From sequence record MZ475891.1: a stretch of DNA of 64,000 nt; one strand, 5' to 3'. A program made the translations under genes and the position numbers. The notes under the pieces were generated by a model. That model did no database searches, had not been told where the DNA came from, and saw only the letters and a program-made list of their open reading frames with translations. Within the stretch, counting starts at the first letter, position 1. Every line of letters starts with the position of its first letter. Below are positions 56,960 through 59,890 of this stretch, piece by piece.

Positions 56960-58552
56960 ATGGCACGTTTCGAAACTAACACTAACCTGGTTGGCAAAAC
57001 TATCGTCCTGCTGAACGGCACCAAAGCGAAGATTGAAGACGCTATCGTTTCTGGCTATAAAGTGAAAGGCCAGACCAAGCGTATCGCAACCCGTGACGTT
57101 ATCAAAGAGGGTGCGCACTTTAAAGAAATCGAGCGCACACCGCTGAGCCAGCTGGAAGATACTGGTGAAGGTTATGTGAAGTTGAAAGAAGCTAAAGCCG
57201 CTTCTAAGAAAGCGCCTGCGAAAGACGCGAAAGCTACTGGCAAAAAAGCTGCGGCGAAAGATAAGCCCGCTAAGACCAGCAAAAAAGCTGCCGCTAAAGA
57301 TAAGCCAGCGAAAGAGCAAGAGCCGAAAGTTCGTCGTAAGTCTGCGAAAGAGCAGGGCAACGACTATCAGGAACTCGCGCAGGCTATCATCAAAGGCGGT
57401 CGCCGTGCAGCGCCAGTTGAAATTGACAGCGTAGACGAAGCGCTGACCGATGCAATCGCTAAGCGTCTGACCGCTGTTGTCGAATCGTCTGAGATTGCGA
57501 AACTCGCCGCTGATAACAAAACGCCGATCGCTAACGCACTAACCGTAACTTACGGCGCTGAATTTGCGACTGATGCAAACGTTGTGCAGATTACGCTGAA
57601 CCTGCAATACGCTAAGCCGACTGCTGTTGAGTCTGCCGCTCCTACTCTGGAGAATGCCGAAGCAATCGCAATGCGTGCTGCTAAAATGGCCGCGCCTAAA
57701 GTGAGCGCTAAACTCAAGAAGGCGGTGCGTGAAGCATTCGACATTGAAACAGACCTCGAGCTGGGCACTGTGATTATATCTGGCGATGATCAATTCGCTT
57801 ACTACGGCGAAAGCGCGAAGCACGCCGGCAAAGCGCTGCTGTACGTTGTCGAAACTGACAAGTTCAAATCTGTCCTGGCTTCTACTCTGACCGACTACGA
57901 ACTGCCTGCTGATGAAGAAGCTGAGGCAGAAGAAGAAGAAGAAGAGGAAGAAGAGGAAGAAGAAGAGGAAGAAGAAGCCGCTGATGACTTCGACGACGAA
58001 GAGGAAGAAGATGCGGACGATGCGGACGATGCAGATGGCGATGACGACGAATTCCAGTACGTTGCTGTAGGCGATGAGCACTTCGCTCTGGTCAACAAAA
58101 AGATCACAGCCAAGTATCATGATGCACTGGCTGAGCAATTCGGCGTTAGCGCAGAAGCGCTGGTCCCAGGCTTAGTGTTGACCAACGGCGAGATCACTTT
58201 CGCTTATCTGGGCAACGATAGCAAAGGCGGCCTGCTCGTTATCGACCTCGACGACGATGCGGACGAAGATGACAACGTTCTGGTCTACCCGAAAGCAGAC
58301 GTTAAATCTCTGACCGACTTCTCTCCTGTGCTGGGTGATGCTGATGAAGAAGACGCAGACGATGCAGAAGAGACCGACGAAGAAGACGAAGATCAGGACG
58401 ACGACTTCGAATTTGACGATGCGCCAACTGCTGACCTCGAAGATCTGTCCGACGATGAGCTGCGTGACCGCGCTGTTGAGATGGGACTGACCACTGTACG
58501 CAAAGCTGACAAAATGAACGCCAAGCAACTGCGTGCTCTGCTGTCTGAATAA
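56960..58552 (+). CDS. large acidic protein: N-terminal domain, H1-like KKAAAK repeats, duplicated beta domain, poly-E/D tracts, C-terminal HeH
   Basis: 530 aa, GAGGAG hairpin RBS. Confidence 0.85.
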   Translation: MARFETNTNLVGKTIVLLNGTKAKIEDAIVSGYKVKGQTKRIATRDVIKEGAHFKEIERTPLSQLEDTGEGYVKLKEAKAASKKAPAKDAKATGKKAAAKDKPAKTSKKAAAKDKPAKEQEPKVRRKSAKEQGNDYQELAQAIIKGGRRAAPVEIDSVDEALTDAIAKRLTAVVESSEIAKLAADNKTPIANALTVTYGAEFATDANVVQITLNLQYAKPTAVESAAPTLENAEAIAMRAAKMAAPKVSAKLKKAVREAFDIETDLELGTVIISGDDQFAYYGESAKHAGKALLYVVETDKFKSVLASTLTDYELPADEEAEAEEEEEEEEEEEEEEEEAADDFDDEEEEDADDADDADGDDDEFQYVAVGDEHFALVNKKITAKYHDALAEQFGVSAEALVPGLVLTNGEITFAYLGNDSKGGLLVIDLDDDADEDDNVLVYPKADVKSLTDFSPVLGDADEEDADDAEETDEEDEDQDDDFEFDDAPTADLEDLSDDELRDRAVEMGLTTVRKADKMNAKQLRALLSE

Positions 58553-58627
58553 GTAACCTGTAGTTCTGAATACATGCGGCTCGAAAGGGCCGCACACTGA
58601 CAACAAAGTTGATTGAGGAATCACATT

Positions 58628-59890
58628 ATGTCAAACGCAAATAAAACTCTGCTTAACGCTCGTGTACGTCTGTCCACTGGCACAACTACTTTCATCAACA
58701 AGATTAACGCGAACGGCTACGGCATCGATGCTAAGGGCCCACAGATTTCTGTGAAGCGTCTTGTTATTGCAGGCAAAATGCTCAAAGAGCTGGCTGAGCC
58801 GCTGCCGCAAGGTGAATACGTTGTGCTGAACGGCGTCACTGTGAAACTGAACAAGCGCCAGCAACGTGAGCTTGCAGAGAAAACGCTCGACACTAAAGCG
58901 CTGCTGCCTGATTTAAGCAAGCTGACCTACGTTGACCCGCAGACAGGCAAAGTCACTGATTCAAAAGTGAAGGCGCCTAAAGCTGGCGCGAAAGCAAGTC
59001 TGAAAGCAACGCGTGAGCACAACAAAGAGCCGAAGCGTAGTCGCAAACAGCACAAAGCTGAAACGAACGATCTCAAAGACAGTCTGGACATTATCGACGA
59101 ACGCAAATCACCGAAAGCGTCTCTGATTGAACGTCTGGATGCAGCAATCGCCGAAGCGAAAACGAAAGCACGCCGTAAGCTGTTAGCCGAAACGTTCGAC
59201 ATGGACTGGGCTGATATTAAAAAGCATGGCGGTGCAGGTATCGTTAAGCAGCATGGCCGCAAGAACGCCCAGAAGTTTATTGATCGTCAGACAGTGCAGG
59301 TCGATAGCACAACGTTCATCAAACAAATGCCAGCGCCGCTCAAGCGTCTTATTCAGGACACTGAGTTGCGTCTCAATCAAAAGCAGATTGAGCAAGTGCT
59401 TGGTGCGCTGGGGCTTGATACGCAATTCTACGCAGTCGCCGTGCAAGAGCTGCTGGGCAAACTCAAACTGTCCATAGGCGGCCGCGTGATCGAAGGCGAA
59501 GTTGTTCGAAAGGAGAACACGCCGAAGCCAAAAAGGTTCGTACACGCTGAGGCGCAATACGCAGATAAGAAAGAAGCGAAACGCCGCGTAAGCAAAATGA
59601 AATACGCGCTGCTGATTCCGCCTACGAAAGGTCTGCCTGCGTTACGCATTCATCAGGCAGAGGCAAAGCAGTCACTCGCCGTTATGCTGCACCTGAAGCC
59701 TGGGAACATCAAGCGTGGTCTGCTTGCGTATGACAACAAAGGCCGTGAGTATATGTATGTCGCTTGCGATATGACGGGCCCTGTGTTCATCGATAAAGAT
59801 AGCAACGAGCTGGCGTTCACGTATGCCAATCTGATCGATAACTTCAAACTCAAAGCGCAGCCTGTGTCTGAACTGGACGTGGCCGTATGA
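58628..59890 (+). CDS. basic paralogue of the upstream acidic protein
   Basis: ATG 58628 behind GAGG hairpin; shares N- and C-terminal domain patterns with 56960..58552. Confidence 0.8.
   Translation: MSNANKTLLNARVRLSTGTTTFINKINANGYGIDAKGPQISVKRLVIAGKMLKELAEPLPQGEYVVLNGVTVKLNKRQQRELAEKTLDTKALLPDLSKLTYVDPQTGKVTDSKVKAPKAGAKASLKATREHNKEPKRSRKQHKAETNDLKDSLDIIDERKSPKASLIERLDAAIAEAKTKARRKLLAETFDMDWADIKKHGGAGIVKQHGRKNAQKFIDRQTVQVDSTTFIKQMPAPLKRLIQDTELRLNQKQIEQVLGALGLDTQFYAVAVQELLGKLKLSIGGRVIEGEVVRKENTPKPKRFVHAEAQYADKKEAKRRVSKMKYALLIPPTKGLPALRIHQAEAKQSLAVMLHLKPGNIKRGLLAYDNKGREYMYVACDMTGPVFIDKDSNELAFTYANLIDNFKLKAQPVSELDVAV

Follow-up and report, generated by a model that had tools for sequence, protein, structure and literature searches.

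The 64,000-nucleotide stretch of DNA that was analysed (hereafter the window) derives from Erwinia phage pEa_SNUABM_13, which has a genome of 264.7 kb. Two neighbouring genes, termed A and B here, occupy exactly the range 56960-59890 for which an earlier note had proposed an adjacent pair of paralogues, one acidic and one basic (Table 1). For B we use the ATG at 58628 annotated in GenBank, the longest open reading frame beginning at a TTG at 58613. The contrast in charge is fully borne out by the computed values, i.e. a net charge of -64 and a pI of 4.34 for the product of A, and +29 and 9.87 for that of B. HMMs of two PHROG families cover the proteins over their full lengths (phrog_33433 on A, residues 1-530, E 1.9e-188; phrog_32501 on B, residues 1-420, E 4.6e-132). 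These families are orthologue groups of Alexandra, Y3, Yoloswag and AD1 phages and are labelled 'unknown function'; in PHROGs they are kept separate and unannotated, and neither a link between them nor the internal repeat nor the domain plan described below is recorded there. A Pfam search of A, B and their parts gave no family above its cut-off, and our literature search found no paper treating either gene.

Table 1. Features of the A-B locus (positions refer to the window; residues to the respective gene product)
Feature	Position	Strand	Remarks
Sigma-70-like promoter element before A	56855..56898	+	conserved 22-mer, then -10-like TACACT about 60 nt before the ATG
Hairpin with Shine-Dalgarno GAGG of A in a 4-nt loop	56940..56955	+	-3.8 kcal/mol, no better than shuffles
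Gene A (pEaSNUABM13_00323)	56960..58552	+	530 aa, phrog_33433
A, N-terminal all-beta domain, residues 1-77	56960..57190	+	homologous to the B N-domain
A, Lys/Ala/Pro-rich disordered linker, residues 78-134	57191..57361	+	pLDDT 31-46; carries both KKAAAKDKPAK units
A, alpha/beta middle domain, residues 135-220	57362..57619	+	two helices and a long beta-hairpin; pLDDT 78-90
A, module copy M1, residues 230-312	57647..57895	+	helices, four strands, short helix; pLDDT 84-91
A, first poly-Glu/Asp tract, residues 313-361	57896..58042	+	73% D/E; run of 16 Glu; pLDDT 33
A, module copy M2, residues 362-455	58043..58324	+	matched to the B module by profile
A, second acidic tract, residues 456-495	58325..58444	+	60% D/E; pLDDT 39-47
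A, helix-extension-helix (SAP/LEM/Rho-N-like) tail, residues 496-530	58445..58549	+	pLDDT 84-93
GC-rich hairpin with GAAA loop between A and B	58575..58594	+	no U-run after it; intergenic fold z -2.1
Hairpin with Shine-Dalgarno GAGG of B in the loop	58610..58623	+	from folding and a genome-wide count
Gene B (pEaSNUABM13_00324)	58628..59890	+	420 aa, phrog_32501
B, N-terminal beta-domain, residues 1-80	58628..58867	+	homologous to the A N-domain
B, first Lys-rich disordered linker, residues 106-158	58943..59101	+	pLDDT 35-44
B, helical domain, residues 159-283	59102..59476	+	most conserved family motif at residues 231-268
B, second Lys-rich linker, residues 284-332	59477..59623	+	from orthologue alignment and model
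B, C-terminal helix-capped barrel module, residues 333-420	59624..59887	+	homologous to M1 and M2; pLDDT 82-91

A and B are genuine, very divergent paralogues. Both start with an all-beta domain of about 75 residues (N-domain), and the similarity of the N-termini, first seen by eye, is recovered in pairwise BLASTP (E 8e-5) as well as in the comparison of the family profiles by hhalign (91-95%, E 4.5e-8 over 55 columns). Profile alignment had been named beforehand as a possible refutation; it shows significant similarity, with a score of 43 as compared to a maximum of 19 in 100 column shuffles (0/100 reach the observed score), and the reversed controls are exceeded, too. In a six-frame scan of the phage genome the top non-self match of each N-domain HMM is the other gene, the cross-matches on orthologues go down to E 4e-9, and intermediate sequences bridge the two families. 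The matched segments are the folded, compositionally unbiased parts of the proteins. The AlphaFold model of A has eight predicted strands in the N-domain (pLDDT 84-90), the predicted secondary-structure elements of A and B, including the strands of the N-domain, are collinear, and a Foldseek search with the model retrieves B orthologues (E 8.8e-10 and 1.7e-6), which, at the level of a predicted structure, is independent support for homology.

The second common element is a helix-capped small beta-barrel module, found in two copies in A (M1 and M2) and in one copy in B. That this module occurs twice in the first protein is corroborated by the comparison of M1 with M2 (hhalign 94%, E 1.1e-7). 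The proposed alignment between the C-terminal regions of A and B holds for profiles (M2 versus the B module, 77%, E 2e-5; M1 versus the B module, 56%, E 1e-4; both scores above 100/100 shuffles) and via intermediate sequences, but not in pairwise BLASTP, where an E of 1.1 is not significant. Moreover, the HMM of the B module detects an A-like protein (E 2.6e-8) and also matches the M2 region in orthologues of A. The JA29-type orthologue of B is without the C-terminal module.

Every orthologue in the comparison, 24 of A and 26 of B, preserves the charge polarity, with net charges from -53 to -103 for A and from +23 to +32 for B, and the members of the wider family are each either acidic or basic. 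Within these orthologues every disordered segment preserves its net charge while sequence and length drift. Thus, the Lys-rich linker of A has a net charge of +10 to +16 in all orthologues at a variable sequence and a length of 44-66 residues, the two acidic tracts range from -16 to -45 and from -23 to -47, respectively, and the first Lys-rich linker of B from +5 to +11. The long poly-Glu/Asp tracts ascribed to A are indeed there, the first being encoded by a GAA/GAG trinucleotide array. A may be described as a block polyampholyte, its basic head (N-domain and Lys-rich linker) amounting to about +16 and its acidic tracts together to about -65. KKAAAKDKPAK occurs exactly twice in A (residues 95-105 and 108-118), the two DNA copies differing at synonymous sites only; the tandem copy was not found in the other 23 aligned orthologues, which keep the K/A/P-rich composition alone. 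The repeats had been called histone-H1-like, and this likeness is one of composition only, as neither Linker_histone nor any other H1 globular domain is matched by A, B or their parts in Pfam, even at E up to 10. The middle domains of A and B show no similarity to each other in hhalign; that of A has weak fold matches only (Z 4-5), and the helical domain of B weakly matches small helical bundles (Z <=5.0), HTH, SAP and LEM domains among them.

All matches of A and B to solved structures are weak (Foldseek E >0.3, VIA Z <=5.5). The N-domain weakly resembles PRC barrels, i.e. small all-beta barrels of about 55-75 residues, the matches of A having Z 3.8-4.7: 1pm3 matches that of A with Z 4.7 (rmsd 2.7 over 54 residues), chain 8onw_H those of A and B with Z 4.2 and 3.5, and 3htr, 2dyi, 9s9g and 8qzo are further weak matches, the Z range of 3.5-4.7 lying below the tool's own level for a fold call. 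PRC barrels account for 6 of the best 50 structural matches of A and for 1 of those of B; among them are the heterodimers CdpB1/CdpB2 and PRC1/PRC2 as well as CdvA. The Pfam PRC model (PF05239, cut-off 21.2 bits), which was found in 12/14 genomes in a control search, matches nothing anywhere in the phage genome (E up to 1), nor does it match the N-domains when these are searched by themselves (E up to 10). In addition to this missing sequence match, the phage domain differs from PRC barrels by two additional C-terminal strands and by its own conserved motifs (G20, I25, G32-Y33, G51, E56, G71). For the modules, KOW and Tudor entries prevail in the weak Foldseek list. M1 weakly matches CarD (4l5g), Mfd (6ac6), the C-terminal domain of UvrD (7egs), the KOW domain of Spt5 (9eh1) and the PHF20L1 Tudor domain (6l0x) with Z 3.9-4.2 (rmsd 2.3-3.1 over 46-58 residues for the first four), and the B module weakly matches the 'capped Tudor' domain of Sds3 (Z 4.1); no sequence signal accompanies these Tudor/KOW/SH3-like barrel matches.

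The best structural matches of the entire A model lie in its tail, the Z values being necessarily low because the motif is so short. Residues 490-530 match the N-terminal domain of Rho (1a62; Z 5.2, rmsd 2.0 over 38 residues), SAP domains (2do1, 1zrj, 7bu5) and a LEM domain (7ndy; rmsd 1.6 over 35). These matches agree with one another. Like these motifs, the C-terminal 35-40 residues of A are predicted to form two helices with an extended turn; they differ in scoring below the Pfam cut-offs (for the isolated tail, SAP, PF02037, E 0.0017 and 18.4 bits at a cut-off of 23.9, and LEM, PF03020, E 0.046, sub-threshold; Rho_N, PF07498, E 0.021 in 1/24 A orthologues) and in following a polyacidic tract in a phage protein. 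Against PDB sequences the tail profile reached no SAP, LEM or Rho chain; its best match (E 0.016) is to part of the C-terminal region of NusA.

The signals around the genes point to strong expression. The 22-mer of the promoter-like element occurs three times in the genome (window positions 55599, 56682 and 56855). Of the 18 related loci, 13 retain it at a distance of 101-108 nt before A; related loci with the 22-mer have a -10 element of the TGnTATAAT/TATACT type. The earlier note had placed the pair behind the strongest early promoter cluster: a rare, conserved sigma-70-like element does precede A, and the remainder of that statement is prediction only. Judged solely by the promoter type and the long same-strand block of small genes, A and B are probably early. 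As no promoter-like site was found directly before B, B is probably co-transcribed with A, i.e. both from the conserved sigma-70-like promoter. The hairpins that display the Shine-Dalgarno sequences, also noticed before, exist in front of both genes. Each is energetically weak taken singly; genome-wide, however, there are eight perfect 5-bp cases with a GAGG loop at about 0.7 expected, all just before start codons and with covarying stems, and A and B own two of them. Both genes are probably well translated from ribosome-binding sites displayed in hairpin loops. The pair is part of a 70-kb block of small genes that lie on one strand and lack annotation. The gene upstream of A encodes a protein of the same build, basic in its N-terminal and acidic in its C-terminal part and ending in a helix-extension-helix tail of the Ish1 type, and genes for type II topoisomerase subunits follow on the same strand 11-15 kb downstream of the pair.

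The two genes are direct neighbours in 17 of the 18 contigs from related phages. PaBG encodes an A-like protein, and contigs of NCTB-like marine phages encode an acidic A-like protein without B beside it, implying for A an independent function that is older than B; this speaks against the narrow view that the purpose of A is to chaperone B. In the domain tree the B-like N-domains cluster on one side, a grouping that is consistent with one old duplication, and A is the older gene and the ancestral form. The N-domain is limited to about 50 sequence clusters among 1.84 billion representative proteins; the family is small, undescribed and restricted to phages. We suggest that one old tandem duplication within the Lu11/PaBG/NCTB/Alexandra group of jumbo myoviruses gave rise to A and B, and that B retained the N-domain and one module, shed the acidic tracts and the tail and turned into a polycation. 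The plan of both proteins would be that of beads on a string, with a PRC-barrel-like N-domain, a middle domain specific to the lineage, helix-capped SH3/Tudor-like barrel modules and disordered, charged linkers.

What might such a pair do? Our best guess, which we put forward tentatively, is that A and B are an abundantly made, probably early pair of nucleoprotein-remodelling factors whose targets in the infected cell would be nucleic acid or nucleoprotein. B may coat or bridge DNA or RNA via its polycationic linkers and barrels, and A may bind via its basic head and its helix-extension-helix tail, whereas the polyanionic tracts of A may compete with nucleic acid for basic proteins, be it host nucleoid proteins or B. 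The two proteins could be brought together by their shared N-domains or by simple electrostatics. A role in nucleic acid transactions is supported by the helix-extension-helix tail, the Lys/Ala/Pro-rich linkers and the Tudor/KOW-type barrels as well as by the like-built upstream gene and the downstream topoisomerase genes, and strong expression by the conserved promoter-like element and the GAGG-loop hairpins. PRC barrels and Tudor domains are, however, mostly protein-binding modules, and thus the folds alone do not imply that A or B binds nucleic acid.

The combination of basic DNA-binding parts and polyacidic tails or partners is known from HMGB1, nucleolin, linker histone H1 with prothymosin-alpha, and nucleoplasmin. 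A and B share with these eukaryotic chromatin proteins the Lys/Ala/Pro-rich tracts, the poly-Glu/Asp tracts and the basic partner beside an acidic one, and the acidic part could likewise regulate or chaperone the basic part. Nevertheless, there is no homology, the likeness being compositional, and a Pfam search of A and B found neither an H1 globular domain nor an HMG box nor a nucleoplasmin core. Acidic early phage proteins that compete with DNA for host DNA-binding proteins are exemplified by T7 Ocr and T4 Arn, small folded proteins whose surface copies the charge pattern of DNA. A is similarly acidic and differs by its basic head and by carrying its acidic residues in tracts predicted to be disordered (pLDDT 31-47), which argues against a folded DNA mimic of the Ocr/Arn type; competition with DNA by a flexible polyanion is possible. 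A more specific scheme, which we regard as quite unlikely, is that one gene was duplicated and inverted in charge to give a phage-encoded pair of the 'chromatin plus chaperone' type or a coacervate pair. Here, polycationic B would compact or coat DNA, either the host nucleoid or the phage genome, A would dock via the shared N-domain and load, evict or buffer B, and the two would jointly set up a nucleoprotein compartment that lacks a membrane, in a lineage of jumbo phages without a known phage nucleus.

Other functions have to be weighed against nucleoprotein remodelling. A and B could be host-takeover factors aimed at RNA polymerase or the transcription-translation machinery, with modules that dock in the manner of Tudor-like domains (CarD, Mfd, UvrD) or KOW domains (NusG/Spt5) and acidic tracts that mimic nucleic acid in the polymerase cleft. 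This would agree with the similarity of M1 (Z about 4) to CarD, the RNA-polymerase-interacting domain of Mfd, the C-terminal domain of UvrD on the polymerase lobe and Spt5 KOW, with the prevalence of KOW/Tudor entries, with the NusA match of the tail profile and with a weak match of the B profile to the ribosomal KOW protein uL24 (E about 1e-3). The level of the barrel matches is, however, that expected of any small SH3-like barrel, they lack a sequence signal, and the uL24 match lies mainly over the Lys-rich linker and is thus likely compositional; moreover, the retention of a basic paralogue beside the acidic one is left unexplained. We consider this role unlikely.

A similarly low probability is assigned to condensate scaffolds, in which A and B, with or without DNA, would undergo complex coacervation and form a membrane-less replication or transcription compartment. 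The opposite, conserved net charges are concentrated in long disordered tracts, both proteins are multivalent owing to several folded modules each, and the two neighbouring genes are probably expressed together. Phage development also offers a precedent, as Gp27 of phage SPO1, a modular early transcription factor, drives phase separation (PMC13401047). Like Gp27, which organises infection-stage biochemistry, A and B are phage-encoded modular proteins with disordered parts; Gp27, in contrast, is a single protein rather than two paralogues of opposite charge, of unrelated sequence from an unrelated phage and host, whereas condensation of A and B is deduced purely from composition, and the NCTB-like phages have A without B.

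It is improbable that A and B are virion-internal proteins that are packaged with the DNA and ejected, comparable to T4 internal proteins or phiKZ inner-body proteins, their charge serving DNA packing or early protection. Large myoviruses do package highly charged proteins. In PaBG, several virion proteins are without an assigned function (PMC7412058). A and B, however, reside in the block of small unannotated genes, behind a sigma-70-like promoter. Interference with host cell division or the cytoskeleton via the PRC-barrel-like N-domain, by analogy with archaeal CdpB1/CdpB2 and CdvA, seems very improbable: the PRC barrels among the best matches and the heterodimerisation of paralogous archaeal PRC barrels (bioRxiv 10.1101/2023.03.28.534520), which makes CdpB1/CdpB2 a possible model for an A-B contact, are offset by Z values of merely 3.5-4.7, a Pfam model that matches nothing in the genome and the absence of CdpB partners from bacteria, and the charged tracts and the tail would be left unexplained. 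Finally, a chance or compositional similarity of unrelated genes, suggested by the BLASTP result for the modules and the compositional bias of both proteins, is close to refuted by profile scores far above shuffled and reversed controls in folded, unbiased segments, by reciprocal genome-best HMM matches, by intermediate sequences and by the independent Foldseek link.

Most genes of the Lu11/PaBG/Alexandra jumbo phages are unannotated. Here, a small, phage-only family is defined and given a domain plan, and two PHROG families that had been treated as unrelated are now linked. The evolution of the pair appears unusual in that a gene was duplicated, the net charge of one copy was inverted and both copies stayed adjacent throughout the divergence of the phages, the adjacency spanning phages of at least three enterobacterial host genera (Erwinia, Dickeya and Yersinia). 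Even if the pair turned out to be ordinary, a usable annotation would remain, i.e. modular, probably early proteins rich in intrinsically disordered regions, with SH3-like barrels and a helix-extension-helix tail. If, however, the pair acts on DNA or condenses, it would provide a simple and tractable model for the regulation of bacterial nucleoprotein by a polyanion and a polycation, and would be a candidate host-takeover determinant in phages that are used against fire blight.

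The window matches Erwinia phage pEa_SNUABM_13 at 100% identity (MZ475891.1; 264,714 bp; host, Erwinia amylovora), and record positions convert to window positions by subtraction of 186,000. The phage belongs to the group of Lu11/PaBG/NCTB/Y3/Yoloswag/Alexandra/Dickeya AD1-JA jumbo myoviruses (PMC7412058). Two of its adjacent genes encode an acidic protein, A, and a basic protein, B (see table), and no statement on the function of either was found in the PaBG, Dickeya-phage and jumbo-phage review literature.

Genes, protein regions and expression signals at the A/B locus (window coordinates unless stated otherwise; aa, residues of the protein)
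Feature	Position	Details
Gene C (pEaSNUABM13_00322)	55851-56672	273 aa; upstream of A
Gene A (pEaSNUABM13_00323)	56960-58552	530 aa; annotated hypothetical
Gene B (pEaSNUABM13_00324)	58628-59890	420 aa; annotated hypothetical
A, N-domain	aa 1-77	eight-stranded
A, linker	aa 78-134	rich in Lys/Ala/Pro
A, middle domain	aa 135-220	alpha/beta
A, module M1	aa 230-312	helices, four strands, short helix
A, first acidic tract	aa 313-361	poly-Glu/Asp, 73% D/E, run of 16 Glu
A, module M2	aa 362-455	
A, second acidic tract	aa 456-495	60% D/E
A, tail	aa 496-530	three short helices
B, N-domain	aa 1-80	strands collinear with those of A
B, helices after last strand	aa 76-92	two, short
B, first linker	aa 106-158	Lys-rich
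B, middle domain	aa 159-283	helical
B, second linker	aa 284-332	Lys-rich
B, module	aa 333-420	single copy; element order as in M1 and M2
22-nt element with -10-like hexamer, copy 1	55599-55642	before gene C
22-nt element with -10-like hexamer, copy 2	56682-56725	before ORF-less hairpin cassette
22-nt element with -10-like hexamer, copy 3	56855-56898	105 nt before A
GAGG of eight tetraloop hairpins	24857, 30042, 30703, 43663, 54493, 56946, 58615, 62020	+ strand
GyrB-like subunit gene	record MZ475891.1 255701-257728	DNA_gyraseB, Toprim; annotated hypothetical
GyrA/ParC-like subunit gene	record MZ475891.1 258463-260124	DNA_topoisoIV, E 5.7e-58; annotated hypothetical

The earlier note had proposed that A and B are paralogues whose N-termini align, and this holds both in BLASTP (E 8e-5) and in a comparison of profiles (91-95% probability, E 4.5e-8, 55 columns), for which relatives were gathered by word-based search (35 for A, 46 for B) and 24 A and 26 B sequences were aligned. 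When the whole phage genome was scanned in six frames from stop to stop (2,937 ORF fragments), the top non-self match of the HMM of either N-terminal beta-domain (N-domain) was the other gene, and a third copy was not found; single-sequence searches of the same genome with either N-domain returned the query as sole match, i.e. the link is visible by HMM scan but missed by single-sequence search. Plain HMMER cross-matches the N-domains of A and B at up to E 4e-9 in 18 related IMG/VR loci. Moreover, a JA29-type B orthologue (309 aa) is an intermediate between the two families, matching the B profile (98%, 250 columns) and, with its N-domain, the A profile (93%, 77 columns). The AlphaFold model of A retrieves the BFVD models of the B orthologues of Yoloswag (359 aa, E 8.8e-10) and JA13 (308 aa, E 1.7e-6), matches that provide independent structural support at the level of predicted models. 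Taken together, profiles, HMMs, the intermediate sequence and the structural models make the paralogy of A and B real, for the N-domain beyond reasonable doubt.

A second shared element is a module, probably a helix-capped barrel, present in A as two copies, M1 and M2, and at the C-terminus of B as one. That A contains it twice is borne out by the profiles (M1 vs M2 94%, E 1.1e-7). Its occurrence in both proteins, also claimed before, is not recovered by pairwise BLASTP (E 1.1) but emerges from profiles, with the B C-terminus matching M2 (77%, E 2e-5) and M1 (56%, E 1e-4). As a control, 100 shuffles of alignment columns and reversed profiles were used: the real scores of 43.0, 42.6, 32.4 and 27.4, covering N-domain and module, all exceed the largest of the shuffles (~19), and reversed profiles reach 10-20. 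Additionally, the B-module HMM detects the M2 region of A orthologues (full-sequence E 8e-6) and a distant A-like protein (E 2.6e-8). Thus, there is good support that the module, too, is paralogous. The middle domains of A and B lack any similarity (hhalign 0.1%), so that the two proteins are not collinear homologues over their whole length.

The opposite charge noted from the sequence is pronounced (A: pI 4.34, net -64; B: pI 9.87, net +29) and its polarity is invariant among orthologues, the A family having a net charge of -53 to -103 (pI 4.05-4.42) and the B family one of +23 to +32 (pI 9.7-10.0). In the models of both proteins folded units (pLDDT 80-93) are linked by disordered tracts (pLDDT 31-47), and in these linkers and tracts charge is conserved, sequence is not: across orthologues and at variable lengths, the A linker carries a net +10 to +16, the acidic tracts of A, both confirmed, -16 to -45 (first) and -23 to -47 (second), and the linkers of B +5 to +11 (first) and +6 to +14 (second). 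The B N-domain is itself strongly basic (+8 to +12). The histone-H1-like unit KKAAAKDKPAK described for A is present in two copies (aa 95-105 and 108-118) with only synonymous differences at the DNA level, and the tandem copy is absent from the other aligned A orthologues (24 aligned). The Glu run of A is encoded by a GAA/GAG trinucleotide array (window 57914-57977). Against the near-identical phages pEa_SNUABM_25, _45 and _46, tblastn aligns A in two pieces covering 91% of the query, owing perhaps to masking of low-complexity sequence or to an altered length of the acidic tract.

Neither full-length A and B nor nine of their sub-regions exceed the cut-off of any Pfam family, and profiles of A, B, the N-domain and the tail find no significant sequence match in the PDB ('Pizza' and uL24 entries being repeat or compositional matches); Foldseek found no match below E 0.3 in the PDB and the ESM Atlas no usable one for B or the A N-domain. 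Wide VIA-align searches with the full-length models of A and B reached Z ≤5.5, single domains of long models scoring low. As there is no strong sequence or structure match, fold likenesses serve as fold-class leads only. The best matches of the whole of A concern its tail, which resembles the Rho N-terminal domain (Z 5.2, rmsd 2.0 over 38 residues), several SAP domains and a LEM domain (rmsd 1.6 over 35), and has sub-threshold Pfam matches to SAP (E 0.0017) and LEM (E 0.046); on these grounds we read the modelled tail as a probable helix-extension-helix motif. For the N-domain, PRC barrels recur among the matches (1pm3, 8onw, 3htr, 2dyi, 9s9g and 8qzo; weak Z of 3.5-4.7), but the Pfam PRC model, although it detects the family in 12 of 14 control genomes, has no match in that of the phage. 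The modules weakly resemble helix-capped Tudor/KOW/SH3-like barrels, e.g. those of CarD, Mfd, the UvrD C-terminal domain, Spt5 KOW and Sds3 (Z ~4). For the helical domain of B the likenesses spread over many small helical bundles, including HTH, SAP and LEM domains and, no less, death-fold and other domains.

In 17 of 18 related viral contigs A and B lie next to each other in the same orientation, and they are neighbours also in GenBank phages of Erwinia, Dickeya and Yersinia. PaBG has an A-like protein, and an acidic A-like protein is encoded by NCTB and by an NCTB-like 232-kb contig (632 and 614 aa, the latter with net -82), in both of which homologues of the genes located 3' of B in the window directly follow the A-like gene and B is absent. 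From 1.84 billion cluster representatives, a profile of the joint A and B N-domain alignment retrieved only 54 proteins (E ≤ 1e-3). Four of these database proteins (P0096, P0121, P0133 and P0135) are spurious, being Ig-like/beta-repeat proteins scored by summed fragments; the others are either acidic (net -33 to -117) or basic (+10 to +35). In a maximum likelihood tree of the N-domain (33 acidic and 16 basic rows, 78 columns, many forks unresolved) the 33 acidic rows are all confined to one side (support 94/85), and the opposite side (71/88) holds 12 of the 16 basic ones. The few basic rows within the acidic clade are short and near-identical to the N-terminal part of an acidic protein, and are thus taken to be truncated gene calls. 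In the simplest history an A-like gene would have been duplicated once, long ago, before Salmondvirus split from Alexandra/Y3/Yoloswag; the copy that became B would then have lost acidic tracts and tail, and in JA-type proteins the C-terminal module would either have disappeared later or never have been retained. A candidate second acid/base pair in a distant lineage (P0125) was discarded as the adjoining basic gene is not a family member, and P0124, inspected for the same reason, sits on a 963-bp contig with no gene context. One B orthologue (P0066) is deposited as a protein of Salmonella enterica serovar Infantis; the 266-kb contig that carries it is most likely a jumbo-phage genome within a bacterial assembly. 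A distant metagenomic relative has, immediately before the gene of its A-like acidic protein, a gene (L042:4235-4792) whose 185-aa product contains TTK repeats and ends in a (P)AAKP-repeat tail that recalls H1; this product does not belong to the N-domain family.

The 264.7-kb genome contains only three copies of the 22-nt element, each followed by a -10-like hexamer and all clustered within 1.3 kb. In 13 of 18 relatives it is found 101-108 nt upstream of A, together with a -10 of the TGn-TATAAT/TATACT type, and is kept upstream of A, and farther upstream, in most Alexandra-type relatives, which fits a putative sigma-70-type promoter. No promoter-like site precedes B, and the 76-nt A-B spacer contains a stable GC hairpin that is not followed by a U-run; judged from these signals, A and B are likely co-transcribed. 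As reported earlier, both start codons are preceded by a hairpin presenting the Shine-Dalgarno GAGG as tetraloop. Perfect 5-bp hairpins of this kind number eight on the + strand of the genome (~0.7 expected) and zero on the - strand, and all eight are located just before start codons within the span of the window (210-248 kb of the genome). Since the stems vary in sequence yet still pair, selection seems to act on the structure itself.

Among 20 neighbouring genes, Pfam and PHROGs identify only families of unknown function, plus a type II topoisomerase whose subunit genes lie on the same strand as A and B, 11-15 kb downstream and beyond the end of the window. The C protein has a basic N-terminal third and an acidic C-terminal part, i.e. 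the same charge layout as A, and its tail gives a near-threshold match to an Ish1-type helix-extension-helix (24.8 bits, cut-off 26.6); a syntenic orthologue exists in JA-type contigs. Despite the similar layout C falls outside the N-domain family (hhalign 0.5%) and is no homologue of A. Upstream of C, both GenBank and ARAGORN place a tRNA-Glu(ttc) of 95 nt (window 55695-55789) that overlaps a terminator-like hairpin with T-run (55700-55727), of which a near-copy is found at 56753-56781 (site 56753-56790).

Regarding function, we tentatively favour a nucleic-acid or nucleoprotein role, which we rate somewhat short of an even chance, on account of the probable helix-extension-helix tail of A, the Lys/Ala/Pro-rich linkers, the basic N-domain of B, the layout and Ish1-type tail of C, and the topoisomerase genes farther along the strand. 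B would be a polycationic binder and A a bipolar protein whose polyanionic tracts may compete with nucleic acid for basic partners, i.e. host nucleoid proteins or B; alternatively, these tracts may fold back onto A's own basic head. Contact between A and B could be electrostatic or occur via the homologous N-domains; archaeal paralogous PRC barrels are able to heterodimerise (PDB 8qzo, 8onw; bioRxiv 10.1101/2023.03.28.534520). A role as dedicated chaperone of B cannot be the ancestral one of A, as A exists without B in NCTB-like phages. That A and B instead target RNA polymerase or the ribosome is unlikely, and the same holds to an equal degree for a function as condensate scaffolds; that they are internal proteins packaged into the virion is less likely still, and interference with cell division is highly improbable. 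Whichever role applies, A and B represent a duplicated modular gene with inverted charge whose copies are kept adjacent, and constitute a hitherto undescribed family that is restricted to phages and unusual in its pair of paralogues with inverted charge.
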